Notes: generated by a model not told the origin, from the letters alone. A stretch of DNA of 64,000 bases from IMGVR_UViG_3300037264_008423:62001-126000, one strand, 5' to 3'. Positions 9,255 to 47,122 are shown, numbered from the stretch's first letter. A program made the numbers and translations.

Positions 9255-9300
9255 ACTATATTATGTAAGTCTGCGAACTGCGGTTACGTTAAGTCAAAGT

Positions 9301-9335: not shown

Positions 9336-9602
9336 ATGACTAACAGGTTGACCGCCCCCGGTAGATTAGACGTAGTAGAGCAGGTGCTCGCCAGCGATCC
9401 TCTTTTCAGCTCTAAAATGACGAGATTCGGCGCGCAGACGATGCGGAATCGAAAAGGCGTGAAAAAGACGTATAGTAACATGACGGTGGGACTGGTCCAG
9501 CGCCTTGCGAAAAAAGGCGTGGATGCCGTGAATTTGCACCGGGACGAACTGATTGCCGAGGCTTTCATGTGTTACGAAATCGGGTCCAAAATCGTCGTAT
9601 GA
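9336..9602 (+). CDS. Hypothetical protein
   Basis: 88-aa ORF after a promoter, with an ATGA overlap with the next gene. Confidence 0.55.
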   Translation: MTNRLTAPGRLDVVEQVLASDPLFSSKMTRFGAQTMRNRKGVKKTYSNMTVGLVQRLAKKGVDAVNLHRDELIAEAFMCYEIGSKIVV

Positions 9603-10036: not shown

Positions 10037-10221
10037 ACCCTGTCGGAGCGTTGTTTTGCGCCGAAACCAGACCCCGTGAGTCGGCATTTGCACTCTGCCG
10101 TGGCGTCTGGAGCGAGGCGGAAAGTGAAGTGGTTCGGGTCCAAAGTTTGTGCAGGCTATGCGAGTATGGACACCGGATACGTCCGCTGGTTCGGTTTACC
10201 CGCGCCCTGCCCCGACAGGGT
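10037..10221 (+). ncRNA. Putative structured RNA containing a delocalised CRISPR-repeat copy
   Basis: Bracketed by a 10-bp inverted repeat ACCCTGTCGG (10037-10046) / CCGACAGGGT (10212-10221), with internal stems. 10142-10164 AAAGTTTGTGCAGGCTATGCGAG matches the 3' 23 nt of the array repeat at 21/23. Confidence 0.6.
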
Positions 10222-10235
10222 TTTGTATTTACGGT

Positions 10236-13200
10236 GTGCAGTTGGAGAATTTAGACGATGACGTGAGCGTGAAGGATCTGGCGGACTATCCGCGCTACCT
10301 GATCCGCAACCCTCAAGGCGACTACTGGTCCAATGACTGGGGATGGGTGGACTACGCCAGCGCCGACATTTTCAGTCACCTGGAAAAAGAGCGGTTCGAC
10401 CTGCCTTCGGAGGGTCAATGGGTTCCCCTGGCCGAATCCCGTCCGGTTATTGGTTTCCCCGGCAATGACTTGAAGGCGCTCCTGGGAGAGGATTTTGTAA
10501 ACAAAGCGGACGCCTTCCTTCAGGAGCAGGGTATGCTGTGCCTCCTGGAGTGGCACCCGCAGGGCCGTCGGGTGGGCCAGGCCCAGGCGGCGGGTCAGGC
10601 GCTCACGGCGCGCTTGAGCCTGAACAGCGCCGACAGCCAGCTCTTGCGCCGCGAGGGGAGCCTGAAGCTTTTAGATCAGTTGCGGGAGAGCGTGCGCGGG
10701 TTTCTGCCCAAGAGCGCCGAGAGCCGGGTCCGGGTGGTTCCCCAGCGTCCCCAGTATGACCGCTGGAACGACCGCTGGAACCTGGAGCTGGTGGTCTTGG
10801 AGGCGTCCGAGGACGACTTGGAGTCCAAAGAGGTCTATTTTGACGATGATCCACCTGAATTTGCCGCTCCCCAGGGCCTTAGCCCGGAGGGAGAGCGCGC
10901 CCGGCAGATCATTGTCCAGGTGCTTCGGCGCAATGGCGATCTGGATTCACGCGGTCAAAAGCATGTTTTCTATACCCCCGAACAATGGGCGCTAAAGGCG
11001 GATGAGCATGTTAAGGACGGGGTATTAGTGGTCGTTCACGATGGCGGCAGCCACGCTCCTTACTTTCACATGTCCTACGCGGCTGAATTAATGCTGAGCC
11101 GGATGGACCTGGCCCTGCGCCGGGAGGGATTTCAAATTTACCCCTACGCCCCTCATTACTCGGTGATTGCTCCGGTGGAACATGACGAGGCTAACCAGTG
11201 GTTTGTGCGCCAGATCGAGGATTGGTTCCAGCGAAACCCGGACCCGGCTGCGGTGCCCGGCGAGGAGCCGCCGCCCCCGGCAGCCACAGGGAATGTCCCG
11301 GAGAGCTTGGAGGACGATGACGATGTAAACTGGAAGGACCTGCAACTGCCGCTGGACAAAGAGGCGGCGATCCGGCACGTGTTTCGGCAGGCGGGGCTGA
11401 AGATCACGTCGATTCAGGAAGTGCCTGAAGACCAGGACTGGGGTGAGCTGGGGCACGCCCAGCGCATCATCGTCACCCGTGTTCCGCCCAATCCCGATCA
11501 GCCCTGGACTACGGACATAAACGCGTGGGAGGCAGTCGATGAGTTTTGTTTACGAATCAAGTCGGCCCTCTATGAGATCCTGGACACGGATGACATCGAG
11601 TGGCTGAGAAACTGGGGCCTGGAGGACCAAGCGCCGGAGGGCCGCCATTGGTATATCTGGTGGTATATCGGCGACCCGGACATCAAGGAAGAGCGGGAAA
11701 TGAATGAATCGGACGAGGACGACTTCGACGTGAAGGACTACTCGGACGACATCCCGCAATCGGATGACTTCCAGGCTTACCTGCTTCAGCGCGGATTTCG
11801 CAAGCTTTCGGGTCAGATGGGAGACTACTTCAAGAAGCTGCCTGCTGCTTACGCGCGGGTTCGGGTTTATCAGTATCCCAACTATGTCAGCTACCTGCTG
11901 GGCCTGAAGGAGGGCAACCACTGGTTTAAGTTGAGCGAGATGACCAACGCCTACCGGGTCCTGTCGGTTTTGCAGCAGCGAGGGCTGTTCGACGTGCGGG
12001 AGGGCCTGGACGAGGAGTTTGGAGCCGATGACGACCCGGAGCTGTATCTCACGCCCACGCCGAACCTTCAGGAGCGGTGGAATCAGTTCGAGGCGGCCTG
12101 GCGCAGTCAGTGGGCGCTCATACAGCGCGGGGTTAATTTCGGCCAGCGCACCGCTTACCTGGAGGGGATCATGCCCTCGCACCTGCGATGGCGCGCCGCG
12201 TTCCAAGAGGTTCAACGGCTCGTTTACGAGCACTTGGGGGGCGGACGCATCGCCGATTTCAAGTATCACCGGGATGGCTACGTCCTGTTTCACATCTACG
12301 ACCTGGGCGGCGTGGTGGAGAGCGAGGCGGAGAGTGAGGCGGATGATGTGGACTGGAAGGAGATCTCTTCCTATCCCAAGCCCAGCGCGCGGGAGGTCCG
12401 GGAAGCCATGAAGCGCCGGGGGATCGTCTATAATCGCCTGGTGCGCGGCAAGGATGTGGTGACCTTCCTGGGCTGGTTTAAGCGGGGTCAACTCGAACTG
12501 GATGTGCTGGCCCTGTTGCGGGAAGCGGCGGCGGAAGCGGGTCTTGACCAGGAGCACGTCCAGTTTTTCTATATGCCCGGCGCGGGTGAGGTCGCGATCA
12601 TCGCGGCGCGGACGGGCCTGTTGGAAAGCGAGGAGGATGAGGACTTTGACACTAGAACCTTGAAGGATGTGTCTGAAACTGGCAAGTTAGTGCCGGAAAT
12701 TGTGGCGGCGATGATCAAAAATGGGGTCATCCATATGATGGTTCGCAGGCCGTGGCAGCCCCCGCCCCACGACTTGCTGCTTTTTATGGGCTTGTGGCAG
12801 GCAGGCAAGACGGACCAGGAGGCCGCCCAGGTTTGCGCGGCGATCCTAAGAGATTTGCGCATTCCCATTACTTCCAGCTTGGACGACTGGTTCAACTATA
12901 TGCCCGGCTCCGGCGATTTCGACCTGGCGCTGCCTGCTTACCTGGTCTTGGACTGGGAGAGGTATGTGGTGGAATCCCAGGCTGGCCTGGTCCAAAAGAT
13001 CATCGAGGCCCAAGGCACGGTTCTAAACGTGCAAGTGGCAGACCGAGAGGAACTTGTCACGATTCAAGGCGAATGGAAGCCCGGAGCCACGGTTCAAGCT
13101 CTTGCCGAGGCCATTAGCGTGGATGCCAATCGGATTCAGTATGACGCCAAAAATGGCGAATTTACGGTGCTGGCAACCCGGCAAGCCCTTGTGCAAGAGG

Positions 13201-14765
13201 ATCAGGCGGATGGCAAGGCCAGCGACACCAAACGGGTCGCCATTGTGGCGGTGTTTCGGCAGAAGCAGGACGATCCCGCCTACGAGTGCCTGGTCTGCAA
13301 GCGCGAGGGGCCGCCAGCGGAGGGCGAATGGGTGATCCCAGGTGGTCATGCCGAGGAGGGCGAGGAGATCAAAGTCGCCGCGCGGCGTGAGTTGCAGGAA
13401 GAGGCGCACGTGGACCTGGGCGACCTGACCTTTGTTAAGACCATGCCCAATGAGACGGGGGACTTGGAAGTCCATGTCTTTGGAGCGATCTTGCCGGAAG
13501 GGGAGAGGGCCAAGGCCGGGGATGACGCGGAAAAGGTGAAATGGCTGCCCCTGGACGATCTGCCCAAGCTGAGCCTGGATAATGACAATTTGATCCGGGA
13601 AGTGGCCGAGGCGATGGAACTGCAACGGCTGCCCTCGGTGGACGAGAGCCTGCCCCCGCGCCTGGCCGACCAGATTCGGTCAAAGATAGCGGCCCTGAAG
13701 CCGCGCCGCGCGAGCCGCGCCGGTATGAGCTTCGAGGTTCAACAGCCAGAGGGATTTGTGGATCGGCTCATCGAGGGGATTGAGCGGGAAGCGGAGCAGT
13801 TGCAAGCCGACGCTCAGCCCGAACTGCGTCTCATGGACCTGATCGAGGATGCCTACAGCCAGACGGGCACCTATTTGTTTCCAGACGACCAGCAGGACGT
13901 GGAGCGATTGGCGCGCGTGCTGGTTCCTTTATTCAAAAAACCAGCCGGACGGCGGATCAAGGAGAGCGCGGACGCTCCCCCGCGCTATGGCACCGTTACC
14001 GACGAGGTAGTGCCTGCCCTGGAACAAGCTCTGGTGGAGATCTTTGGCCAGCGTTATGACTGGCTGGTGCCCCACGTGATCCAGCACATGGACCCGGAGA
14101 TCTCTTTGATCGCGATGGAGGGTGATCGCGTGATCGGTTTCTACATCCTGGGCCGCCGTTCGATCTTGGACGGCGTTAAGAGCGAGCACCTGAAGCCCAC
14201 TGAGGATTTGAAGCCCTATCGGCAGCGCCAGGGCATTGAGGGGGTAGCCCTGGGCATTGTGCCGGATCGCCGGGGCACGGGCCTGGGCAGCCGGTTCAAA
14301 GACTATCCACAAACCCTGGGCGCGGATTATATGTGGGGTCTGCAAATGCATGATCTGGATAACCTGAGCCACTGGCTCAAGCGCCGCCGCATTGTGGCGC
14401 GCAACCCGGAGATGGTCGCGACCCTCCAGGACTTTAAACCGGGGGCGGTAGCGGAGGCCAGCGAAGAGGATTTCGAGGCCAAGGACTTGGAAGATGATTT
14501 GCTGAATGACGAGCATTTTCAAAAGTTTGCCCAGGAGCACGGCCTACTCTACCACCCTGGCGCTAAAATGGTGCGCGACGTGCTGGATAATGTTTATGGT
14601 TCCATTTGGTTTAAGACCGGCCCCTATTTAAATCGGGAGGCCACGGTCCGCCAGTGGACCCAGGTGTTTTCCGACTATTTCAAGATCGATCCCGCCCGGA
14701 TGAAAGTGGCCTATTACCCGCCCAGTGGCGACATTATGGTCATGGTCACGAATCTGGTTCTGTAG
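10236..14765 (+). CDS. Modular polyprotein-like protein with 7 acidic tag linkers; cargo includes Nudix and GNAT domains
   Basis: Likely start GTG 10236 (TATTTA-N4-GTG). Nudix box GGHAEEGEEIKVAARRELQEEAHV at about 13341. GNAT motif A VALGIVPDRRGTGLG at about 14245. Recurring E(S/A)-acidic-KD tags. Confidence 0.75.
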   Translation: MQLENLDDDVSVKDLADYPRYLIRNPQGDYWSNDWGWVDYASADIFSHLEKERFDLPSEGQWVPLAESRPVIGFPGNDLKALLGEDFVNKADAFLQEQGMLCLLEWHPQGRRVGQAQAAGQALTARLSLNSADSQLLRREGSLKLLDQLRESVRGFLPKSAESRVRVVPQRPQYDRWNDRWNLELVVLEASEDDLESKEVYFDDDPPEFAAPQGLSPEGERARQIIVQVLRRNGDLDSRGQKHVFYTPEQWALKADEHVKDGVLVVVHDGGSHAPYFHMSYAAELMLSRMDLALRREGFQIYPYAPHYSVIAPVEHDEANQWFVRQIEDWFQRNPDPAAVPGEEPPPPAATGNVPESLEDDDDVNWKDLQLPLDKEAAIRHVFRQAGLKITSIQEVPEDQDWGELGHAQRIIVTRVPPNPDQPWTTDINAWEAVDEFCLRIKSALYEILDTDDIEWLRNWGLEDQAPEGRHWYIWWYIGDPDIKEEREMNESDEDDFDVKDYSDDIPQSDDFQAYLLQRGFRKLSGQMGDYFKKLPAAYARVRVYQYPNYVSYLLGLKEGNHWFKLSEMTNAYRVLSVLQQRGLFDVREGLDEEFGADDDPELYLTPTPNLQERWNQFEAAWRSQWALIQRGVNFGQRTAYLEGIMPSHLRWRAAFQEVQRLVYEHLGGGRIADFKYHRDGYVLFHIYDLGGVVESEAESEADDVDWKEISSYPKPSAREVREAMKRRGIVYNRLVRGKDVVTFLGWFKRGQLELDVLALLREAAAEAGLDQEHVQFFYMPGAGEVAIIAARTGLLESEEDEDFDTRTLKDVSETGKLVPEIVAAMIKNGVIHMMVRRPWQPPPHDLLLFMGLWQAGKTDQEAAQVCAAILRDLRIPITSSLDDWFNYMPGSGDFDLALPAYLVLDWERYVVESQAGLVQKIIEAQGTVLNVQVADREELVTIQGEWKPGATVQALAEAISVDANRIQYDAKNGEFTVLATRQALVQEDQADGKASDTKRVAIVAVFRQKQDDPAYECLVCKREGPPAEGEWVIPGGHAEEGEEIKVAARRELQEEAHVDLGDLTFVKTMPNETGDLEVHVFGAILPEGERAKAGDDAEKVKWLPLDDLPKLSLDNDNLIREVAEAMELQRLPSVDESLPPRLADQIRSKIAALKPRRASRAGMSFEVQQPEGFVDRLIEGIEREAEQLQADAQPELRLMDLIEDAYSQTGTYLFPDDQQDVERLARVLVPLFKKPAGRRIKESADAPPRYGTVTDEVVPALEQALVEIFGQRYDWLVPHVIQHMDPEISLIAMEGDRVIGFYILGRRSILDGVKSEHLKPTEDLKPYRQRQGIEGVALGIVPDRRGTGLGSRFKDYPQTLGADYMWGLQMHDLDNLSHWLKRRRIVARNPEMVATLQDFKPGAVAEASEEDFEAKDLEDDLLNDEHFQKFAQEHGLLYHPGAKMVRDVLDNVYGSIWFKTGPYLNREATVRQWTQVFSDYFKIDPARMKVAYYPPSGDIMVMVTNLVL

Positions 14766-14959: not shown

Positions 14960-15234
14960 GGAAGGTGATTACAGGTTATCTTTACCGGGGCCAGCCCATC
15001 TACGAGGAGTGGAGCGATGATAAGCTGGAATTAAAGTGGTTCAGCCGCGACATCATGCCCCTGAAGGAGGGCTGGAAGTTTAAAGATTGGCACTTTCTGC
15101 ACGCGATCCGCTTTGAGCCTCACGAAAAAGAAGGTATGTCCGGCGACCCTGAAAAGACTTCCAGGGTCGTCGCGCGGGTGATGGAGGGCCGGGAGCGAGT
15201 TTGTCAGCTTACCGGAGTGGAAAAAGTGGTATAG
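14956..15234 (+). CDS. Hypothetical protein
   Basis: 92-aa ORF with an ATGA overlap. Confidence 0.55.
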   Translation: MRKVITGYLYRGQPIYEEWSDDKLELKWFSRDIMPLKEGWKFKDWHFLHAIRFEPHEKEGMSGDPEKTSRVVARVMEGRERVCQLTGVEKVV

Positions 15235-15293
15235 TAAAAAAAGTTTACTTTTTTGATTGCACTCTTTTCAGTCTTCGCTTAATCTCTTTTAAG

Positions 15294-16985
15294 ATGAATA
15301 CGGAAAGACAAGATCAGCCCTCTGTGAATCCCGCTCCGGCCAGCGTAGATGAAGCGCAAAGAGCCAAGCAGGAAGCCATCGCCCAGGCCAAAGCCAAAGC
15401 CCAGCGGAAGCAGGAGGAGAAAGAGGCAAAAGGTTTGCCCCGCTCGATTAAGCTTAAGCCCAAGCGCGTGCTGGAGTGGGAATGGGGTCCCTACCTGTAT
15501 AAGCAGCTTCGGGTGTGGGAGGCGACGACTTTTATGCGCCGCGAAATCTACCGTGGCCTTTTCAACGCGGACACTCCTCCCTATAAGACGGGGCACGACC
15601 GGTTGCAGCCTCACACCCAGGTATTCGGAGCCATCACCACTTACGCGAATCGGCTTTTAAAAGATTTTTCCGCTAAAGTCCAAATCCTGCCTGCCTACAT
15701 TACGGGGTTCATGACCAAAATTTATGCCGAAGACTATGCCGCTCGACGGGAACACATTTTGGTGACGGGCCTGGACTTTATTCCGATAGGCGGCTTTCCC
15801 GCGCAAGTGGAGATTCGGGCGGAGAACGTGGAGATTTTAGTTAACCCCGAAGATCCTCGTGGTTTTCTGATCCGGGTGCCTTTTTACCGCCACGATGTGC
15901 CGACCAAAAACGGCGGAACGAAATCAGAGGTCGTTTACGTGACCTACGTGATTGATCCCAAGGGGGACTGGCAGACGGGCAGCAGCCTTAAAAAACAGCA
16001 CCGCGCCAGCGCGTTTGACGGCACGCCTTTGCTGGAAAGACTGCGGACCGGCGAGCGCACGATGGGATCGTTGAAAATTTTGGGCAAGTTCCGATACGCT
16101 TCCTCCAGCGAGGCGAGGCTATTGCGGGAACAGGAGGACCGGGTGAGGGAAGCCAAAAAGAAAAACGATCCCTCGGTTGTAAAAATACCCTGGGAAATCA
16201 CTGATCCTTTCACGGTGGATGGCGTATTGCTGCCGCCCTATAAGCGCGACAAGTATAAGCGGCGCGTGGTTTACGAGCCGGTCCTGCAACTGTCTTACTA
16301 TCTGCCGCCGCTGCCCCCGGAGCGGGAACGGCGCGGCTTGGCCTTCTGCTACACCGATCCAGATCGGTTTATGGCGATCAAGATCCATCAAAATTTTGAG
16401 CGGGACCTGGACGACGAGCTGGTCCGTAGATCCTTGTTTATGTCGCAGAAGATCTATGAGCGCCACAAGCTGCTGGACCCCCACAACAAGATGTCGGTCA
16501 TGTCCCCGGAGCAAATCCGTGAGCTAGTTGAGCTTTCGGATCGGCGCTACACCGGTATTCGCCGAATGACGCGCTTGTTTGGGACGGGAGGCAACTCTAA
16601 AATGAAGGGCGTGAGCCAGAAAATCAAGGGGATTACCCTCCATTTTGACCATTCGGTAGTGAAAGCTTTCATGAACTTGGTCATCGAGCGCAACGCCGCC
16701 GAGTTTTACTATTTTGACGCGGACCGGCGCTACATGGAGCACTATCACTGGTTCATTCTCAGGGACTATTTTGCGCAGGCGTGCAAGGTGCTCCAGATCA
16801 AGTTCCATTACCTGGAGGGCTGGCAATTTAGCGATTGCCAGGCGGAGGAGAAAAAAGGCGGTAACTGGGACTTTAATAAGATTTACTTGCGGATACGCGG
16901 CGAAAAATCGAGGCGGACTCGTGCCGAGCACGAAAAATACAGTCAGGAACAGTATGAAAGGAGCTTAGCAGATGAAAAACCTTAG
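15294..16985 (+). CDS. TnpB/Cas12-like (type V-like) CRISPR effector, RuvC apparently inactivated
   Basis: 563 aa from ATG 15294, about 0.85 kb from the array. Segment order parallels TnpB/Cas12: N-terminal RSIKLKP strand; last WED strand VLQLSYYLP; RuvC-I-like strand RRGLAFCYTD (GID position reads AFC); basic bridge helix; FDHSVVKAFMNLVIERNAAEFYYFD (RuvC-II region); YHWFILRDYFAQACKVLQIKFHYLEG. No CxxC finger or RuvC-III. Confidence 0.7.
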   Translation: MNTERQDQPSVNPAPASVDEAQRAKQEAIAQAKAKAQRKQEEKEAKGLPRSIKLKPKRVLEWEWGPYLYKQLRVWEATTFMRREIYRGLFNADTPPYKTGHDRLQPHTQVFGAITTYANRLLKDFSAKVQILPAYITGFMTKIYAEDYAARREHILVTGLDFIPIGGFPAQVEIRAENVEILVNPEDPRGFLIRVPFYRHDVPTKNGGTKSEVVYVTYVIDPKGDWQTGSSLKKQHRASAFDGTPLLERLRTGERTMGSLKILGKFRYASSSEARLLREQEDRVREAKKKNDPSVVKIPWEITDPFTVDGVLLPPYKRDKYKRRVVYEPVLQLSYYLPPLPPERERRGLAFCYTDPDRFMAIKIHQNFERDLDDELVRRSLFMSQKIYERHKLLDPHNKMSVMSPEQIRELVELSDRRYTGIRRMTRLFGTGGNSKMKGVSQKIKGITLHFDHSVVKAFMNLVIERNAAEFYYFDADRRYMEHYHWFILRDYFAQACKVLQIKFHYLEGWQFSDCQAEEKKGGNWDFNKIYLRIRGEKSRRTRAEHEKYSQEQYERSLADEKP

Positions 16986-17655
16986 CAACAACAGCCAAGC
17001 GGTGGACCAGAACCTCGACCATCAGCTTGAGGCGCTATTCAAGAGCCAGTCGGCAAGCACGGAGAAAATTGCCTGGGTGATGATGGAAATGGTGGAGCGC
17101 CTGGATGGGGGATGGGTCCCGCGCAATGTCGCGGCGGTTACGGACCATATCCAGACCAAATATCGGCTCAGCAAGTTCATGATTGAAGGTTATTTTCGCG
17201 TGGCGAGAAAACTAACCTTGGTGGGGGTTTTTAGCGAGAAAAACGCCGCCGCCAGGGTGGTGCAGTTCTTCAGTATTGACGCCCAGCAGCAGGCGTTGGG
17301 CGGTATCCCTGTTTACCAGGGACCCGGTAAGAAAGCCAAGATCGAGAAGCTGCACCAGATTGAGGACCGGGAGGTCCCGATGATTTTTGACGAGCGCCTG
17401 CGCAAAATCCGTTCTGTGGAGGAGCAGGCGGCTTACACGGCGCTCGCCATGCGCCAGGTTGGACCGGTCAGCAAGTGCGCTGTGCGGTTTTGGCCTAATG
17501 GTGTGTATAAGCTGATTAAGAAAGCGAGCCGCGTGGATCAAGCTTACTGCTCTGACGCGCTGAAGAGACGGGGAGTGGAGTCCGTTCCTGATTACGCGCT
17601 AAGGGCGCAGATTGACCGGGACATCGAAAAAGAATTTGGCTCTGAAAAGGGCTGA
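16972..17655 (+). CDS. Hypothetical protein translationally coupled to the effector
   Basis: 227 aa, overlaps the effector stop by 14 bp, and is the last gene before the array. Confidence 0.75.
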   Translation: MKNLSNNSQAVDQNLDHQLEALFKSQSASTEKIAWVMMEMVERLDGGWVPRNVAAVTDHIQTKYRLSKFMIEGYFRVARKLTLVGVFSEKNAAARVVQFFSIDAQQQALGGIPVYQGPGKKAKIEKLHQIEDREVPMIFDERLRKIRSVEEQAAYTALAMRQVGPVSKCAVRFWPNGVYKLIKKASRVDQAYCSDALKRRGVESVPDYALRAQIDRDIEKEFGSEKG

Positions 17656-17657
17656 AA

Positions 17658-17834
17658 AATACACCGTATCGCAGCGGTGTTTAGCCAGGGGATCTGCGCC
17701 TGCGCCGATTCCTTGGGGAAGTCCTCCACACTGCGAGCGCCGTCGATTTTCGGCTTAACTTTAAGTTGGCCGTGCGGCGGCGCTCGCAAACTTGCTCTTT
17801 GACAATTGATGCTGAGTGACTTGCGGGGTGCGGG
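17658..17834 (+). ncRNA. Putative tracrRNA/scoutRNA-like structured leader region
   Basis: Hairpins 17661-17680, 17685-17716 and 17732-17788 (14-bp outer stem). CCTCCACA at 17723-17730 is complementary to repeat nt 20-27. Confidence 0.5.
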
Positions 17835-18405
17835 GTAGCACTGCTTAAAAGCTTGTGGAGGCTATGCGAGTCCACCTTTACTATATAGCTGACGGGTGAA
17901 AAGCGGGTATCACCGCTCAAAAGCTTGTGGAGGCTATGCGAGGCTGAGCTGGATAGGCACTCGGAAGCGGTCGTGCAAGTAGCACCGTTAAAAGCTTGTG
18001 GAGGCTATGCGAGCGCAGCTACCCCTAAGACCTTTTCCACCGGCGTTCTGTATCACTGCTTAAAAGCTTGTGGAGGCTATGCGAGATGACCATTGCGCCC
18101 ATGATGTGGCGCTGCGACTGGTATCACCGCTTAAAAGTCTGTGGAGGGCTATGCGAGAAGGTGGCTTACGGATACGCTGCTTAAAAGCCTGTGGAGGGCT
18201 GTGCGAGATGAGTGTCCCGAAAGCATTGAAGTATCACTGCTTAAAGGTTTGTGGAGGGCTATGCGAGAATAAAGTTTAGGAACGACGTGAAATTACTGAG
18301 GTATCACTGCTTTAAAGCTTGTGGAGGCTATGCGAGGATGATCTGGTCGTAACCATACGGCGCTTTGTAGTATCACTGCTTAAAAGCCTGTGGAGACTAT
18401 GCGAG
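17835..18405 (+). CRISPR. CRISPR array, 9 repeats / 8 spacers, consensus GTATCACTGCTTAAAAGCTTGTGGAGGCTATGCGAG (36 bp)
   Basis: Repeats start at 17835, 17907, 17979, 18050, 18121, ~18171, 18231, 18301 and 18370. Spacers are 36, 36, 36, 35, ~13, 23, 33 and 33 nt. Orientation inferred, not proven. Confidence 0.95.
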
Positions 18406-18430
18406 CACGTGGACAGTTCAGAGCAAAAAG

Positions 18431-18453
18431 CGCAATCTCCACAAGCTTTTAAG
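18431..18453. repeat. Anti-repeat (inverted copy of the CRISPR repeat core)
   Basis: CTCCACAAGCTTTTAAG (18437-18453) is the exact reverse complement of repeat nt 10-26. Pairing extends with bulges to CGCA at 18431. Confidence 0.85.
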
Positions 18454-18476
18454 TGTTAAAAATAGTTCTACCGGAC

Positions 18477-40436: not shown

Positions 40437-41087
40437 TTAATTGACTTTCTGGAGGATACATTGCATGGGCCAAAAATGGATGAAGGCTGTGTCGCCTTGC
40501 AGTTTGTCCATGATGGCAATTCGCGCCAGCAGGGCGGCGTCAAAACGAGAGCGGTCGTTACAGAAATCGGTGGTGGGGGGATTGAGACTAAGGCCGGGCC
40601 GCACCTGGACATAGGGCGTGAGGTCGTAGTAGGTGTTGGCCAAATCCTCGATGGTGTAGAGACCGCCCGGTTTCAAGTGGCCCCAGGCGGCATCCAGGCT
40701 CCCCAGCATGTGCTCCACCAGGTGACTGCCGTCATCGATAATAATGTCAAAGGCGGTGTCGGCGGCGGCGGCGGCGGCGGCGCGCGCCCGGTGAAGAACT
40801 TGCGGGTCGCACTGATGGCCCAGGATCACGGAGATGCGCTCCCCGTAAAACTGGTTGGCCTGCGGGTCCTGGTCAATGCCGATCACACTGGCGTTGCGGA
40901 AATAGTCGCGCCAGACTTTCAGAGAGGAACCCCGATACACTCCCAGTTCCAGCACGCCGCGCACTTGATCCCGGATGGGCGCGAAATAAGTTTCGTAAAC
41001 ATCCAGGTAAGATCGGCCACAAAAGGTGTGGTAGCGGTCCGCCTTGTCGGTTTGGTGCCGGAGGCCCAGTGATTGGAGCGGGTTCAT
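40437..41087 (-). CDS. Class I SAM-dependent O-methyltransferase
   Basis: VLELGVYRGSSL, VIGIDQD, FDIIIDDGSH, LKPGGLYTIED. Confidence 0.85.
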   Translation of the reverse strand: MNPLQSLGLRHQTDKADRYHTFCGRSYLDVYETYFAPIRDQVRGVLELGVYRGSSLKVWRDYFRNASVIGIDQDPQANQFYGERISVILGHQCDPQVLHRARAAAAAAADTAFDIIIDDGSHLVEHMLGSLDAAWGHLKPGGLYTIEDLANTYYDLTPYVQVRPGLSLNPPTTDFCNDRSRFDAALLARIAIMDKLQGDTAFIHFWPMQCILQKVN

Positions 41088-41719
41088 ACTTTGCAGAAAA
41101 TGGCCTGTTTGGACCAGAAGTGCAGAAAGCGAATGTCCCCCTGGTGGAGATCCATGATCTTTAGCTGGTCGGCGAAAAAGCGGTCCAGCTTAGATCGGTC
41201 CAGCTTAAAGTCGGTGGTCTCTGGCGGATTGTGCTTCTGCCCCGGCCATTCCCTCCAGGAATTGGAGATGTCACCCCAGTGAGACACTTGCAGGTCCTCG
41301 ATAATGTAAAAGCCGCCCGGTTTAACGCGCGGCCAGAGCAACAAGTAGCTGGCAATCTGGTGGTCGATGACGTGGCTGGCGTCGTCAATGACGACATCAA
41401 AAAGTTGATCCGGGGCGACCAGGCTCAAAGCATTGGGATCAATTTGGCTGCCCGTGACTACCTGGATGCGCGGTCCATAGTCGGCCTTGGCCTGCGGGTC
41501 CAGGTCCAGCCCCCATATTTGCGCGTTGGGAAAGTAATCGCGCCAGACTTGCAGGGAGCGACCCTTGAAGACGCCCAGCTCCAGCAGGCAGCGGACATCG
41601 CAACGGATGCCGCGAAAGTAGATTTGATAAACGTCCAGGTAGCTGAGGTCGCGGAACGTGTGGAGGTTGTCCACTTTATCCGTGCCGTATTGAGTGCCGA
41701 GCAGGTGTAATTTTCTCAT
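41084..41719 (-). CDS. Class I SAM-dependent O-methyltransferase (paralogue of the adjacent gene)
   Basis: LLELGVFKGRSL, IWGLDLD, FDVVIDDASH, VKPGGFYIIED. Confidence 0.85.
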   Translation of the reverse strand: MRKLHLLGTQYGTDKVDNLHTFRDLSYLDVYQIYFRGIRCDVRCLLELGVFKGRSLQVWRDYFPNAQIWGLDLDPQAKADYGPRIQVVTGSQIDPNALSLVAPDQLFDVVIDDASHVIDHQIASYLLLWPRVKPGGFYIIEDLQVSHWGDISNSWREWPGQKHNPPETTDFKLDRSKLDRFFADQLKIMDLHQGDIRFLHFWSKQAIFCKV

Positions 41720-41720
41720 G

Positions 41721-43564
41721 TCAGGCTTTTTCAGGCGGAGCTGCGTCCAGGGTTGAGGTTAGTTTATCTTTCAGGTCACACAGCTTGTGAATGACAGGGA
41801 TCTCATGCCGCGCGAAATAGTGAGCGGCATGCGGCGCAGGCTGGGCCGAGGCCCTGACGATGCACCAAAGGATGAAGTCAATCTCGTAGCGAGTCAGGGC
41901 CTCGCTACTCGGTGAGGGTTTGGACATTGGGACTCCTTTCGGCTACGGCCACGTTGGCGCTGACGCGTTTGCAGACTTTGCAGGCGATAATGAGAATGCC
42001 CTCATTGCGGCAAAAGCCCACCACCGTGCCTTTTCCGGGATGGCACTGCTGGATCAAGGTCATGTGATCGTGCTGAGCGTGGGGTCCTTTGCACTCAGGA
42101 TCGCTACAGCCCTTCTCCATGAGTTTCAGCAAGTCTTCTTTGTAAATGATGGACATAGATGAATTGTAGTTTTTTCTCCAGGGGCACGTCGTCTAAAGTA
42201 GCGGACACGCTATCGAGCACCCGGAGCAGGGCTTCTTTTTGCGCGTCGGTCCACGGTTTGTCCTGGTGCTCCTGGCGCAGGTCTTCCAACGGGTTTCCCA
42301 GGTTGAGCTGGAGCGCCTGGGCGATCAAGTCCCGCAAGTGGACAGCGGCGTCGGCATACTCTCGATTGAGTCCGACCGTGACGAATTGGTAACCCGTCTC
42401 GTGGGACCAGGTGACCAGCACGGTCACGTCCGGTCCGAAGTCATGAATGAATTGGCGCAGTTCTTCCACGGTGACCGGGTGGGGCGGTTTGTTAAAGATG
42501 TAAATCATGGCTGCGGAGTAATCGAGGGTTCATCCAGAGACAAAGGGGCGTAGGGCCGGGGTGTCTCCGCCTGGTCGCCCGGTTCGTCAGGCGCGCAGGG
42601 GTGCGATTCCGGCACCACAAAAGCCTCCAGCCGGATGCCGCTGGTGATGTGATTGGCGATGGCCATCGAGCGCACGGTGCGGAACCAGTCTTGAATGAAA
42701 GGTTCGGCTTCCTTCGCCTTCAGTCTCTCGACGCGGCGCGCCAGGGTGATTGCCATCAGGTGCTCGGAAAGGGCGCAGCGCCGCTCGAACTCCAGGATTT
42801 GGTCGTCCGTGGCATACAATTCAACGCGTGTTTGCAGGGGTAGCATAAGCTTAATTTTTAATGGTCTTTTGATCCGCTGGAGCATGGTCCTCCACCAGCG
42901 TTTTGTCAAATTCCGCGAACAATCTGTCAATTTCCCGGCTGCGGTGCCGGGACCAGCACACCAGCGCCGCCCGGCCTTTCCCCGCGACCGCGTTACAGGC
43001 CAGCGAGCCGCTGAGGTAGCCGATCAAGAAGCCCAACTGGGTCTCAGGTTTGGCCTGCTGGTAATTCGTCACCGCCATCGCTTGGCGGATCGTCACAGGA
43101 AACTTGGCCTTTGTGTTCATTCGTATCGGTTGGTAGAACGGAATCGAGCGGGGTGCCACTGACCACCAGGTTTTGGATTTTCTGGCAGCGGAGCACGCAG
43201 CGGCCATCCACATTTACCCACAAGGCCCGGTGATCGGCGCTGATTTCAATCTCCACGGCTTGGGCTGAGGCGAGGTCGGTCATGGCTTGGGCTGGTGCAG
43301 GGCGTTGGAGAGTCGCAGCTCAATGCCGCGAAGCACCACCAGCTCATTGCTGTTGGTGCTCCGGGCAAGGTCCAGGCGCACCTGGCCCAGCGCGTTGGAA
43401 ACCGCCGCCCAACCGCGCGCGGGGTCTCGGACCGGCGTCGGCGGGGGCGTGTTGGTCAGCGTGTTGGAGGCCGGGCCAGGCGCTTTCCCTGGAAAATACT
43501 CCAGAATAAAAAACATAAGCACAGACAAGAGGGCGACGAGGATAATAACTTTCATAGTTTTCAC
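41721..43564 (-). other. Cluster of small hypothetical genes (41721-41927, 41905-42156, 42104-42508, 42505-~42870, ORFs ending at 42851 and 43044, and the 43280-43564 membrane protein)
   Basis: Packed short ORFs; CKVCK in 41905-42156; N-terminal TM helix in 43280-43564. Confidence 0.5.
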
Positions 43565-43585
43565 AGGTTCAGGCTCAGGCGAGCA

Positions 43586-43960
43586 TTAGTGGGGTAAATT
43601 TAATTGGTCCACCCGCCACACTTCCGCCTGGCCGTTAGAGAAGAGCCAGTCGCTTGCGCCGACATAGCGGCCCTGCTCGTCGTAGCCCGTAACGACCACC
43701 GGGGTGCGGTGGACCCAGGCGGACCCGCGCACCGGCACCGCTTGGCCGGGGGTGAGGTTGGTATAGAGCAGCACGCTGTCCACCGTCACGTTGAGCCGGT
43801 AGCGCGTGTTGTTGTTGACGACCGTCATGGCCCCGGACGCTACCGGCGTGGCCATCGGCCCGGAGGGCAGGGTGTAGTATTTGGTCGCGCATCCGCACGC
43901 CAAGCACAGCGCCATTCCGCATAGTTTTATTCGTAGCATGATTCCAGTTTCCCACACCAA
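43586..43960 (-). CDS. Putative lipoprotein
   Basis: Hydrophobic signal ending LACGC. Confidence 0.55.
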   Translation of the reverse strand: MVWETGIMLRIKLCGMALCLACGCATKYYTLPSGPMATPVASGAMTVVNNNTRYRLNVTVDSVLLYTNLTPGQAVPVRGSAWVHRTPVVVTGYDEQGRYVGASDWLFSNGQAEVWRVDQLNLPH

Positions 43961-44195
43961 ATATAAATTGTAAACAAAAAAATGATGCTATATGCCGTTC
44001 TGTTAAACTGCCGTATGAAGTATATGAATCATACAGATGCGCCGCCGTCAAAAAATCAGCGAGAATACGCCTCCTGGTGGAGAAAAAACACCGTTAGAGG
44101 CAGGCGCATGGCTTTCCAGAAGGATTTCAAGTTCTATGCTATAACTGTAACTTTGGAAAACGTAACGGAAAAGTCTGTCCACACAAACTACAAAA

Positions 44196-44486
44196 ATGAT
44201 AACAAAAGAACAAAAAATTACGCGAACGTCCTTCAAACAGCAGGCCGATGTGATTGCGGCGCTTCTGCGCACCAATCCCATGATTAACGACTCCGATAAG
44301 CTGTCGATGAACGAAACGGTGGGGGTGCTGATCTGGTTGAACCAGTTGCAGCTCCAATGGGAGGCGGAGTCTAAACCGGGTTCCAACGATGAGGCGCACC
44401 AGGCCAACCAGGCGCGCTTGGACTCGATCTACGATAAGATTTTTTCAGGGAGAAAACCCGCGAAGGCCAGTCCGCCTCCGGTTTAG
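44196..44486 (+). CDS. Hypothetical protein (lone plus-strand gene)
   Basis: 96-aa ORF after an AT-rich gap. Confidence 0.5.
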   Translation: MITKEQKITRTSFKQQADVIAALLRTNPMINDSDKLSMNETVGVLIWLNQLQLQWEAESKPGSNDEAHQANQARLDSIYDKIFSGRKPAKASPPPV

Positions 44487-44989
44487 CTTTCCAGGCGGGG
44501 CAAGAGGCGGTCCGCCGCGCTCTGGACCCACAAGGCTTCTTCCTGGCCCATTGATCGCTGTAGCTCGGCTTTGAGCCGGGCGATGGCCGCCTCATTGCGT
44601 TGATGAGGCGGCTTGGCCTCCTCGGCGCGCAGGGCTTGAATCACTTGCTGATAGTCCGCTGTGGTCGCGGGGGGTCCCAGGTTCGGCGCTCCCAGCGCGC
44701 CGGGATCGAAACGCTGCGGACGGCTGGGGCGTTGGTAGATGGGCACCGTTTGCGCCGCTTCGGGCGACGCGTTGACCGGAATATCCTGCGGGTCATCCAG
44801 CAGCGTATCCGCCGCCGTGGGAATGTCCTCGCCAGGCGACTGTCCGCCCAGGGCGGCTTCCTCGTCCGGGTGGAGCCGGGGATTGCCGTGGGGCTTCCAC
44901 TGCATCCGGTTCTGCCAGCGGTTGCGCTGAGGGCCTCCAGGGTCGGCGGGAACATTGCCCAAGCTGATCTCGTTAATAGTCCGTTTCAC
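44483..44989 (-). CDS. Hypothetical Pro-rich protein
   Basis: 168 aa; TATTTA-N4-GTG start; INE near the N-terminus. Confidence 0.55.
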   Translation of the reverse strand: MKRTINEISLGNVPADPGGPQRNRWQNRMQWKPHGNPRLHPDEEAALGGQSPGEDIPTAADTLLDDPQDIPVNASPEAAQTVPIYQRPSRPQRFDPGALGAPNLGPPATTADYQQVIQALRAEEAKPPHQRNEAAIARLKAELQRSMGQEEALWVQSAADRLLPRLES

Positions 44990-44992
44990 AGC

Positions 44993-45798
44993 TTAAATAC
45001 TCCGCTTCATGTCTTGAAGGATTTTGTCCAGCGCGTAAACGTTTACTCCCGGCAGGCGCACCGGCCCCGCTTGATACTCCTGGGGTAGCGGACCGGCTAC
45101 GGCGTAGGCCGGGTCAAACTGCTGGCCTTCGATGGACAGCCAGGCGTGGGGCACCGCGTCGCCGTCCTGGCGCACGGTGCCTTGAAGCAAATGGGCGCTT
45201 AGACCGCGCGACTTTAGAAAGCTGAACACCAGGCGCGATACGGCATGCGGTTCCCTGGTGAAGAGGTTCCGATGGCGTTGGTAGAGCCAGCGTGTGGCCG
45301 TGTGCGCCAGCTCCAGACTCGTGGAGTGGACTTCGAGCAGATAGTTTACAATCTCACGCGCTTCGCCCAGGTAATCGACCTCCACCGGCTCCAGGGATTC
45401 CGGGAACAGGATCATGATGTCCGCGCCGCCTTCCTCCCGATAGTTGTTGGGAATGAACCAGCCATCGTAGCCTTCGCGCTGGACCCAATCCGCCACGGCT
45501 TCCACGTCGTACTCTCTGCCAAAACCTCGCTCGTGATTTCGTCGAAGGTCGGCTTGTCCGGGATCAGCAGCAAGCGCAGGGGGGTCGTGACCCGGTAAGT
45601 GACGACGCGCGCGTGCGCTCCCAGCTTTTGGCCGTAGGGAACGGGATCTGACTCGCCGTGCCAGTTGACAAACCAGCGCGCCACGCGCGGCTTCTCGCTG
45701 AAGAAGGCCGGTCCCTGGATCTCGGCGTCCGCAAACTCGGCGTTGGTGCCGTGGTAGAGCCGGTAACCGGGCCTGAGAGTTTTAGTCCTGAGCCTCAC
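44993..45798 (-). pseudogene. Frameshifted ADP-ribosyltransferase-like gene (two ORF halves, 45412-45798 and 44993-45505)
   Basis: YRLYHGTNAEF...PAFFS...EVLAE in one frame continues as YDVEAVADWVQREGYDGW...GADIMIL in another frame, at the GAGAG at 45512-45516. Confidence 0.65.
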
Positions 45799-45802
45799 AC
45801 CG

Positions 45803-46444
45803 TTAACTACCCCCTACTTTGCGGTGGATTTCCCGCATGGCTTCCAGGCCCCGGATGAAATGGCCGACCATGTGCTGGGCGGTCATATTTTGAAATGACC
45901 AGGGTGCGATCAGCGGTTCGTTTTTGATGCGGATGCCCGGCAGGGCGTGAACGATCTTGCCGACAAACCAGTCCTCATCGTGGCGATCCAGGGGCAGTTG
46001 GTCGGCCACAGCCTGGGCGCAGGCGCGTGACAGGGAGTAGCCGCCGCCGTGAGGCTTTTGCACGCCGTCCTGGGCCAGGTAGATGCAGCCCACCACATCC
46101 GCCTGCTCGAAGGGATAGGTGTTGAATAGCCGGGGGTTGAGGTAGCTGTCGTCGTCGCACTTGAAAAGGTAGGGACTGTCGAAAGCGGTCAAAAACCACT
46201 GGCAGAACCGTTTGACCTTGGTGGTCAGGCTGCCCAGGGTGTCGTCGCACCGAACGCGCAAGAAAGGGGGATCATAGGTGTAGTCTTCCAACAACGCGGT
46301 TTCGCCAATGAGAAATACTGGCTGGAATTTGCTGCGGTCAAGCAGAGGCACCCAGGTTTGCAGGCACCCCTGGCGGCGATCCGCGTGGGCGGACCGGATT
46401 TGGCAGGTTTGGATGCCAACCGGGATCAAGTTTTTGGCGACCAT
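45803..46444 (-). CDS. GT31/galactosyltransferase-like glycosyltransferase
   Basis: DDTLGSLTTKVKRFCQW, YLFKCDDDSYL, HGGGYSLSR, DEDWFVG. Confidence 0.75.
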   Translation of the reverse strand: MVAKNLIPVGIQTCQIRSAHADRRQGCLQTWVPLLDRSKFQPVFLIGETALLEDYTYDPPFLRVRCDDTLGSLTTKVKRFCQWFLTAFDSPYLFKCDDDSYLNPRLFNTYPFEQADVVGCIYLAQDGVQKPHGGGYSLSRACAQAVADQLPLDRHDEDWFVGKIVHALPGIRIKNEPLIAPWSFQNMTAQHMVGHFIRGLEAMREIHRKVGGS

Positions 46445-47115
46445 TAAAACTGGGGCATGACGGTGATCACCTGGTGGAAGGACCGCACGCCCAGCGGCGG
46501 CAAGGGCGGCACGCTGTAGCGGATCTCCGTGGTGTAGCCGCCTTCCCGGCCTGTGGTGGACACGGCTCTGGCTGTAAACCAGTAGTTACTATAAGTCAAT
46601 AGATTACTAATGGTCACCGACCGGGCATCGGGGGGGAGCCTGAGCAGGTTGGTGGTCAACCTCGCCTGGGTGTTGGTGTTGATGAAACCCCAGTAAACGC
46701 GGTATTCGTTGAGCGGAACATTGGTTACGCTCAACCATTGCAGCCCCAGGATATTGGGTTTTCGGCCCTGCCATAAGGTCAGGTATTGAAAGCCCGGCAC
46801 GCGATCCGGTTCCGGGAAGGGCACCTGGTAGCTAACTTCATTGGAAAAGTCGCTCTCCAGGCCGCTGGTATTAAAGGCGGTTACCGCAAAGTAATAAGTG
46901 ACCCCCTCGCTGAGTCCTGAAACGGCGGTGTTCGTTACCAGGCCCAAGACATTGGTGTGAGTATAGACCCCGCTGGCGGTGCCGTAGTAGAGCTTATAGC
47001 CAGCCAGGTCCGGTTCGGAGTTGGGGTCCCAGGCGAGCGAGACGGAACGGAGTTGCGCGCCTACCGTGGCGCAGAGGCACCCGAGGAGAGTTAATGTAAA
47101 CAGGAGTCTTTTCAT
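46444..47115 (-). CDS. Signal-peptide protein with two fibronectin type III domains
   Basis: SVSLAWDPNSEPDLAGYKLYYG...YYFAVTAFN.SG.ES; second FN3 domain with YWFTARAV. Confidence 0.8.
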   Translation of the reverse strand: MKRLLFTLTLLGCLCATVGAQLRSVSLAWDPNSEPDLAGYKLYYGTASGVYTHTNVLGLVTNTAVSGLSEGVTYYFAVTAFNTSGLESDFSNEVSYQVPFPEPDRVPGFQYLTLWQGRKPNILGLQWLSVTNVPLNEYRVYWGFINTNTQARLTTNLLRLPPDARSVTISNLLTYSNYWFTARAVSTTGREGGYTTEIRYSVPPLPPLGVRSFHQVITVMPQF

Positions 47116-47122
47116 GGTATTT

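Follow-up and report, generated by a model that had tools for sequence, protein, structure and literature searches.

A solitary truncated CRISPR repeat far from the array of a phage with a Cas12f-like module

How does the end of a CRISPR repeat come to stand alone between two phage genes, 7.7 kb from the array that it matches, and could it give rise to a guide RNA there? The question is raised by a 64,000-nucleotide stretch of DNA (IMGVR_UViG_3300037264_008423:62001-126000; hereafter the window, to which all coordinates refer unless a relative is named), part of a 238,436-bp contig whose phage is a singleton. A first-pass annotation had placed the repeat copy inside a separate folded RNA and proposed it as a natural single guide, or else as a decoy for a dead effector. 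The features of the locus are listed in Table 1.

Table 1. Features of the repeat copy, the module and their counterparts in relatives
Feature	Position	Strand	Remark
Upstream gene, 154 aa	9569-10033	+	Without family match; element would fall in its 3' UTR
5' arm of perfect 10-bp long-range stem	10037-10046	+	Partner 10212-10221; excludes terminator hairpin
Solitary truncated repeat (pseudo-repeat)	10142-10164	+	21/23 to the 3' 23 nt of the repeat; G-to-C in tracr-pairing segment
Spacer-like segment, ~39 nt	10165-10203	+	Between pseudo-repeat and hairpin; target searches negative
Terminator-like hairpin, 6 bp (4 G-C), then TTTTGTATTT	10204-10231	+	3' half common to 10-bp stem
Giant gene, NUDIX domain, near repeat copy	10236-14765	+	1509-aa called product; GTG start 10236
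Effector, 563 aa	15294-16985	+	Predicted Cas12f/TnpB fold; AF2 model and Foldseek
Partner protein, 227 aa	16972-17655	+	Directly downstream of effector; in every relative
tracrRNA-like scaffold	17710-17791	+	8-nt anti-repeat CCTCCACA, then conserved G+C-rich stem; covariance model, 68 bits
CRISPR array, 9 repeats and 8 spacers	17835-18405	+	Repeats 36-37 nt
Inverted repeat copy, 17 nt	18437-18453	+	Exact reverse complement of CTTAAAAGCTTGTGGAG; 32 nt past last repeat
Partner gene, L003	8346-9041
Partner gene, L004	3011-3715
Partner gene, L005	5319-6032
Partner gene, L006	11427-12128
Partner gene, L008	11668-12300
NUDIX gene near repeat copies, L004	4614-5129
NUDIX gene near repeat copies, L017	10001-14800

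The plus strand at 10142-10164 reads AAAGTTTGTGCAGGCTATGCGAG and agrees at 21 positions with the 23 spacer-proximal nucleotides of the array repeat, exactly as first annotated. Searching the window with this 3' 23-mer at up to three mismatches returned six array copies and, as the sole non-array site, 10142-10164 with two mismatches; none of 100 shuffles contained such a match (0.00 expected). The last 14 nt of the repeat, at up to one mismatch, likewise found only this one extra site (0.01 expected), and the last 13 nt of the copy are identical to the array repeat. The sequence before the copy agrees with the 5' 13 nt of the repeat at 5/13 positions, about the random level, giving the copy a sharp 5' edge. 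Within the copy, a G-to-C change sits in the 8-nt segment that pairs with the tracrRNA-like scaffold's anti-repeat. Read at the level of sequence, the copy is well supported as the delocalised functional, spacer-proximal part of the array repeat. It has the same orientation as the array and both flanking genes, and lies about 72 nt upstream of the giant gene. The database-called product of that gene, from the same contig, sets the start at GTG 10236, and the similarity of its N terminus to homologues begins at this position; the repeat copy is therefore intergenic, and a location within the coding region of the giant open reading frame was ruled out. The exact repeat pattern of the window is absent from all other IMG/VR contigs and from JGI metagenome contigs.

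The perfect 10-bp stem that had been reported to close the element (10037-46/10212-21) is indeed present, and is used in the minimum-free-energy fold. Its 3' arm doubles as the 3' half of a terminator-like hairpin (10204-10221) that begins about 40 nt after the repeat copy, so the two structures are mutually exclusive. The idea of a distinct, stable fold did not hold up: on the plus strand the element has a z of -1.54, with 12 of 200 shuffles as stable, and on the minus strand a z of -2.70. Screening the whole window against Rfam at gathering thresholds gave no match, a tRNA scan of the same sequence gave no tRNA gene, and no promoter was identified for the element.

A self-contained single guide, in which the element would carry its own scaffold fused to the repeat, draws on the closing stem and on several internal stems, and the family does have fused guides of a kind, since a truncated repeat directly follows the real scaffold in two relatives (L003 and L014), at the main locus only. 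In the element, however, no second scaffold was found: the family covariance model, run with filters off over 10037-10141, gave -0.7 bits (at 10037-10089), against 68 bits for the scaffold at 17710-17791. That the tracr region had been duplicated ahead of the copy was rejected as well, the score of the local alignment being reached by 91 of 2000 shuffles (p ~0.05). The compensatory change once suggested for the pairing of GTGCAGG in the repeat variant with TTTGCAC in a loop fared no better, the predicted energy of -11.5 kcal/mol being equalled or surpassed by some 30% of 21-nt pieces taken at random from the window, so that the local anti-repeat is at background. Given also the unremarkable plus-strand fold, we consider a natural single guide at this site very unlikely, and the least probable of the explanations.

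If the element has no scaffold of its own, its use as a guide would depend on what the module provides. The module (15201-18460) lies directly downstream of the giant gene, and the loci of relatives show the order effector, ~230-aa partner, conserved structured RNA, CRISPR array. Neither Pfam, NCBIfam nor PADLOC has a match to the effector, its homologues have no Pfam match, and comparison with the PDB by sequence, using phmmer and a profile search, found nothing. An AlphaFold (AF2) model from nine family members (pLDDT 71.6, pTM 0.60) was best matched by Foldseek, among PDB structures, to AsCas12f (8j12_A, E 2.6e-13); further matches were to OsCas12f, Un1Cas12f1, dCas12f, TnpB, Cas12m and Cas12k, and include the dCas12f-gRNA complex 9n9c. 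An Atlas search gave the same Cas12f/TnpB lead. The description of the effector as dead found no backing. Each of the three RuvC motifs has a candidate acidic residue: D355 is invariant in the family, an acidic residue occurs just past strand 470-474 in all members (D475 or D477 in the window), and D526, which caps the final helix, is present in four to five of six aligned effectors. Only the Zn-ribbon (TNB) insert of Cas12f is clearly missing, there being no CxxC pairs between strand 503-507 and helix 527-560.

Relatives of the effector are few. Word-indexed protein searches, among them one of 5.8 billion proteins with the effector, recovered the query alone, and scans of IMG/VR and genome contigs with the effector profile found no relatives. 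An exhaustive HMMER search of 1.84 billion representative proteins returned eight including the window's own, that is, seven distant relatives; this search and a metagenome scan (seven more loci) are the only sources of the relatives described here.

The partner gene of about 230 codons always comes right after the effector gene, with stop and start overlapping or abutting. Its product is confidently modelled (pLDDT 78.5) and has no match among PDB folds, in BFVD or in PADLOC; Pfam gives none at E <= 0.01 (one weak sub-threshold match has an E of 0.13). By Pfam and fold search it is not a sigma factor or HTH protein. We regard it as a candidate new accessory of the Cas12f-like effector. Of the seven genes scanned between 9.5 and 18.9 kb, the only domains recognized were NUDIX and DUF3307, and a Cas1/Cas2-like domain is missing both from these seven genes and from the precomputed Pfam annotation of the relatives' loci. 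Judging from the structural model and the locus layout, this looks like a phage-borne, tracr-dependent, Cas12f-like (type V-like) module.

The dependence on a tracrRNA is suggested by the scaffold, whose covariance model scores 52-87 bits in every lineage, with an invariant lower stem and an upper stem that covaries across the family. Just 5' of the scaffold stem is an anti-repeat of 6-8 nt that changes in step with the repeat: CCTCCACA goes with TGTGGAGG in the window, CACCACC with GGTGGTG in L003, TACCGCC with GGCGGTA in L004, and GACCACA with TGTGGTC in L014. Predicted duplexes of anti-repeat and repeat have a mean of -13.0 kcal/mol for cognate pairs versus -8.4 kcal/mol for non-cognate pairs, and the cognate pair is best in five of six rows (lineages). 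In the window, predicted pairing with the anti-repeat is -15.9 to -22.4 kcal/mol for array repeats and -10.2 kcal/mol for the solitary copy, the level of random sequence; the G-to-C change leaves the copy with 7 of 8 pairs and places a C-C mismatch at the centre of the helix. If the window unit is used, it would thus depend on the scaffold RNA in trans and would pair with it less well than array repeats do. A conserved TGTTCTTTGACA-like box follows the scaffold stem (17793-17805 in the window, and also in L004, L006, L008, L012, L014 and L015), and may be the -35 element of an array promoter or a part of the RNA. The conserved TTCTTTGACA box after the scaffold was also considered as a general phage promoter, an idea dropped because the window has no further copy that convinces.

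Arrays follow the operon in every lineage with sequence available, and reach about 34 repeats. In the window, array repeat ends run from 17870 to 18405 and spacers measure 36, 35, 36, 35, 13, 23, 33 and 33 nt, the two short ones being at 18158-18170 (13 nt) and 18208-18230 (23 nt); three of the repeats carry an extra G. In-array repeats of L003 and L004 are trimmed to their last 13-14 nt, and in the L008 array the 5' halves of the repeats vary, with CTTGGTGAATGCGG kept. The arrays look degenerate, or partly built by duplication. The spacer-proximal part of the repeat is the part conserved or retained in these three arrays, which supports a functional reading of the window copy, itself confined to that part.

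Upon examination of the relatives for a similar pattern, solitary truncated repeats were found in three of the five lineages with enough flanking DNA, and each matches the repeat of its own phage. Non-array cores of 13-14 nt with at most one mismatch number one in the window, three in L004 and two in L014, where 0.00-0.04 are expected. The L004 copies, three at 4400, 6072 and 6106 and a weaker fourth at 4516, lie right behind stop codons, upstream of a NUDIX gene and another gene. L014 has one at 9355, where two genes meet some 580 nt upstream of the effector, and one at position 2223 of the opposite strand. Solitary copies are absent from L003 (18 kb covered), from L008 (21 kb covered) and from the 6 kb downstream of the L016 array. 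L014 turned out to be part, together with L017, of one 242,565-bp phage contig ('phage B') that shares synteny with the window in the giant-gene region; it carries P0011, a homologue of the giant gene, and a module of the L014 type about 25 kb away. Within the 25 kb of L017 there are five copies of phage B's own repeat core (counted at up to three mismatches of the 18-nt 3' end of the repeat), against an expectation, obtained by scaling, of about 0.03. Two of these, at 9294 and 9329, form a tandem duplication of a 35-nt unit, preceded by a stop codon and followed by the next ATG; the giant gene has one copy at its 5' end and one in its interior (22/23 to the repeat), and the fifth is at the start of another gene. 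The two related jumbo phages, whose repeats differ, thus both have copies of their own repeat at or close to the giant NUDIX gene. The tracr-pairing segment is intact in five of the seven copies of phage B. Eight of nine independent solitary sites have the orientation of the local genes (p ~0.02 if orientation were random), and in all three phages that have such copies some are found beside or within NUDIX genes. The NUDIX protein of L004 was also considered as an orthologue of the NUDIX domain of the giant protein and rejected, the similarity being only at the level of the NUDIX box.

The recurrence of solitary copies in relatives argues for a stand-alone crRNA-like unit, and is the best evidence that the window copy is meaningful. 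What recurs is the pattern, solitary copies of a phage's own repeat; the window sequence is absent from the matching intergenic region of the closest syntenic relative. Between the window's phage and phage B this region can be aligned only over its last ~70 nt, the terminator hairpin has no conserved counterpart in the syntenic L017 region, and near its giant gene L017 has neither a window-type repeat nor a scaffold.

Searches for a target of the spacer-like segment were negative in each collection: there is no match in the GenBank phage set, the exact 20-mer of the guide is absent from 185,579 species genomes, and its exact 18-mer occurs in IMG/VR only in the contig itself. In the 64-kb window the first 18 nt have a best match of 13/18, short seed matches being beyond the reach of such a search, and no promoter target with a PAM partly matching the segment was found there. 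The arrays of three phages have no protospacers among GenBank phages, and 125 array spacer starts, together with the solitary spacers, gave only chance-level matches to the window and all fetched loci. One solitary spacer of L004 (4414-4433, after the copy at 4400) matches L004 7693-7712, 3.3 kb downstream, at 15/18 positions, or 17/20 when extended, with a per-query chance of about 0.01 and with mismatches in the would-be seed; the latter site is possibly a target, or a chance match.

The copies could also be footprints. Three copies of phage B are in frame within coding sequence (L017 9971-9988, 13032-13054 and 19106-19123), where they read (V)CGQ(C)(G), and two of them put CxxC motifs into the giant NUDIX protein. 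The giant protein of phage B has a 13-aa CGQCG insert that is absent from the window homologue, and its N-terminal VCGQCG is absent from L020; either the repeat units have been co-opted for a Cys motif or the motif is a coincidence of the insertion frame. Insertions of this kind indicate that units of the size of a repeat plus spacer have been inserted and tolerated, and the solitary copies in general may be such by-products of recombination or ectopic insertion without function. This explanation also accommodates the pair at L017 9294/9329 as a plain 35-nt tandem duplication, the damage that the change in the window copy does to tracr pairing, and the empty target searches. It can call on rearrangements known to have occurred: in phage B the module (40479-47192 on ERZ27247916 k141_547371) is on the opposite strand from, and about 25 kb apart from, the giant gene (~70559-75358), and from its different position in two related jumbo phages it follows that the module or the region has moved. 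A passive origin is harder to reconcile with the abrupt limit at the repeat's functional part, with the high identity of copies to the cognate repeat although repeats have diverged between phages, with the co-directionality of eight of the nine sites, and with the reappearance of the pattern in three lineages. We hold it to be somewhat unlikely, second to the best reading given below.

The positions of the copies relative to genes suggest another role, in which each copy is a cis-acting RNA tag, that is, a binding or processing site through which the effector with the tracr-like RNA, or else host RNase III, would control the neighbouring gene. In the window, binding at 10142-10164 could choose between the long-range stem, allowing read-through, and the terminator hairpin, causing a stop, two structures that share an arm and exclude each other. 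Several copies of relatives lie just past stop codons and 10-12 nt before start codons (L004 4400 and 6072; L014 9355; L017 9329), they run with the local genes and are beside or within NUDIX genes in three phages, and most phage B copies have kept the tracr-pairing segment. The window copy, however, has the weakest predicted tracr pairing, the window fold is not significantly stable, and the hairpin is not kept in the syntenic region of L017; in L004, moreover, the promoter-like TGTATAAT is downstream of the units, which places them outside the leader of the NUDIX gene. A cis-acting tag is in our judgement unlikely. A broader version would have scattered repeat-derived tags let the tracrRNA and effector make guides of the phage's own transcripts, or bind these directly, and this we consider rather improbable too; the tag sites would then be 3' UTRs, gene junctions and in-frame coding sequence, and the equally improbable outcome would be an RNA-guided expression circuit, repeatedly at NUDIX genes, in place of immunity.

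The decoy that had been suggested would soak up the effector or tracrRNA, either of the phage's own system (as dosage control) or of a related system in a competitor phage. In the copy the handle part is intact and the pairing part altered, as might suit a decoy, and RNA anti-CRISPRs (Racrs) are a reported precedent for phage-encoded solitary repeat units (PMC10651486). Racrs, however, mimic the repeats of a host to block host immunity, whereas the window copy matches the array of the phage itself, as do the copies in each relative, and a weakened tracr pairing would make a poor decoy for a tracr-dependent effector. A decoy is therefore very unlikely.

The best reading, which we favour tentatively and short of calling it probable, is that of a solitary repeat unit (SRU) giving a crRNA-like RNA that depends on a tracrRNA in trans. 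A working part of one kind or the other, crRNA-like unit or RNA tag, is probable. The SRU would comprise the pseudo-repeat, the spacer-like segment and the 3' hairpin, and would be part of the phage's own Cas12f-like CRISPR module. It would be transcribed on the plus strand as the upstream operon's 3' UTR, with transcription stopping at the hairpin and T-tract (10204-10231). The 23 nt retained would correspond to the portion of the repeat kept as the 5' handle of a mature type V crRNA, and the RNA could then be captured in trans by the 17710-17791 scaffold RNA and the effector. The product would be a hard-wired, non-adaptive crRNA-like RNA with a guide beginning TATGGACACC. Its role would most likely be regulatory, a fixed target being bound or silenced, possibly in connection with the giant NUDIX gene, and less likely one in immunity. 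We infer these steps of transcription, processing and loading, and the regulatory role, from the arrangement described above.

We favour the SRU because the match is beyond chance and confined to the spacer-proximal part of the repeat; because the system looks truly tracr-dependent, given the predicted Cas12f fold, the conserved scaffold and the covariation of anti-repeat and repeat; because copies recur, specific to each phage's own repeat and mostly co-directional with genes; and because the layout is that of crRNA-like RNAs demonstrated by experiment (10.1101/2024.12.27.630466). It is weakened by the tracr pairing of the copy, which is at background, by the lack of an identified target or promoter, by the absence of its sequence from the closest syntenic relative, and by the in-frame insertions of phage B, which fit passive footprints equally well. 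The stand-alone guide put forward in the first-pass annotation is supported in part, by the delocalised copy on the same strand, the 3' hairpin and the recurrence in relatives, and is not supported as a separate folded RNA.

SRUs that reprogram CRISPR effectors for regulation are established in type I and type II systems, and in type V-K for transposon homing; we know of none described for a phage-encoded Cas12f-like system. Saito et al. (Cell, 2021) reportedly described crRNAs of a delocalised, or atypical, kind from type V-K CRISPR-associated transposons. Similar to those transposons, the present locus has a truncated repeat and putative guide outside the array of what looks like a tracr-dependent type V system. 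Unlike them, it has no Tn7-like transposition domain (TnsB, TnsC or TniQ) in the seven genes between 9.5 and 18.9 kb, no attachment-site or genomic match to the guide, and no tRNA gene in the window.

crRNA-like RNAs made from SRUs, with a pseudo-repeat, a spacer-like segment and a 3' hairpin, have been shown experimentally (10.1101/2024.12.27.630466). The type I crlRNAs (CreA/CreR-type) share this anatomy: a single degenerate repeat with its handle preserved precedes a spacer-like segment and a 3' hairpin, and the unit lies beside other genes, away from the array (10.1101/2024.12.27.630466). Here the setting is instead a phage-borne, tracr-dependent Cas12f-like module and not Cascade, some copies in a relative lie within coding sequence, and no partly matching promoter target with a PAM was found nearby. 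Guides made from ordinary transcripts are another parallel: mRNAs with a repeat-like stretch give, with a tracrRNA, non-canonical crRNAs for Cas9, a process reprogrammable for Cas12b, Cas12e and Cas12f, so that a repeat-like sequence in an ordinary transcript could become a guide via the tracrRNA (PMC11246509). Those, however, are incidental matches in host mRNAs, whereas the copies described here are near-exact, recurrent and phage-encoded, with weak predicted pairing in the window copy. The guides of dCas12f systems can likewise lie at other genomic sites (PMC13472631). The module shares with Cas12f (V-F), dCas12f/sigma-E and TldR systems a small effector of predicted Cas12f/TnpB fold, a scaffold just upstream of the guides and a conserved accessory in the operon. 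It differs from them in having no relation at the sequence level, a partner without sigma or HTH match, true CRISPR arrays and a phage setting.

Since SRUs and delocalised crRNAs are already known, what is new is the setting and the pattern: a very rare phage-borne module, Cas12f-like by its predicted fold and with a conserved partner, and dispersed copies that run with genes, some of them in coding sequence, and that appear repeatedly at NUDIX genes. If the copies are functional, the virus would be hard-wiring guides or RNA tags into its own transcription units, in a compact natural system that would bear on how CRISPR guides evolve from or into regulatory RNAs and could find use as a miniature programmable binder. 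Footprints, by contrast, would be a record of units the size of a repeat and spacer spreading in phage genomes, including in-frame insertions into genes.

One further repeat-derived sequence lies beyond the array itself. The inverted copy at 18437-18453, which reads CTCCACAAGCTTTTAAG, is absent from the four other lineages checked; it would form a long hairpin with the last repeat, or would serve as a second, long anti-repeat.
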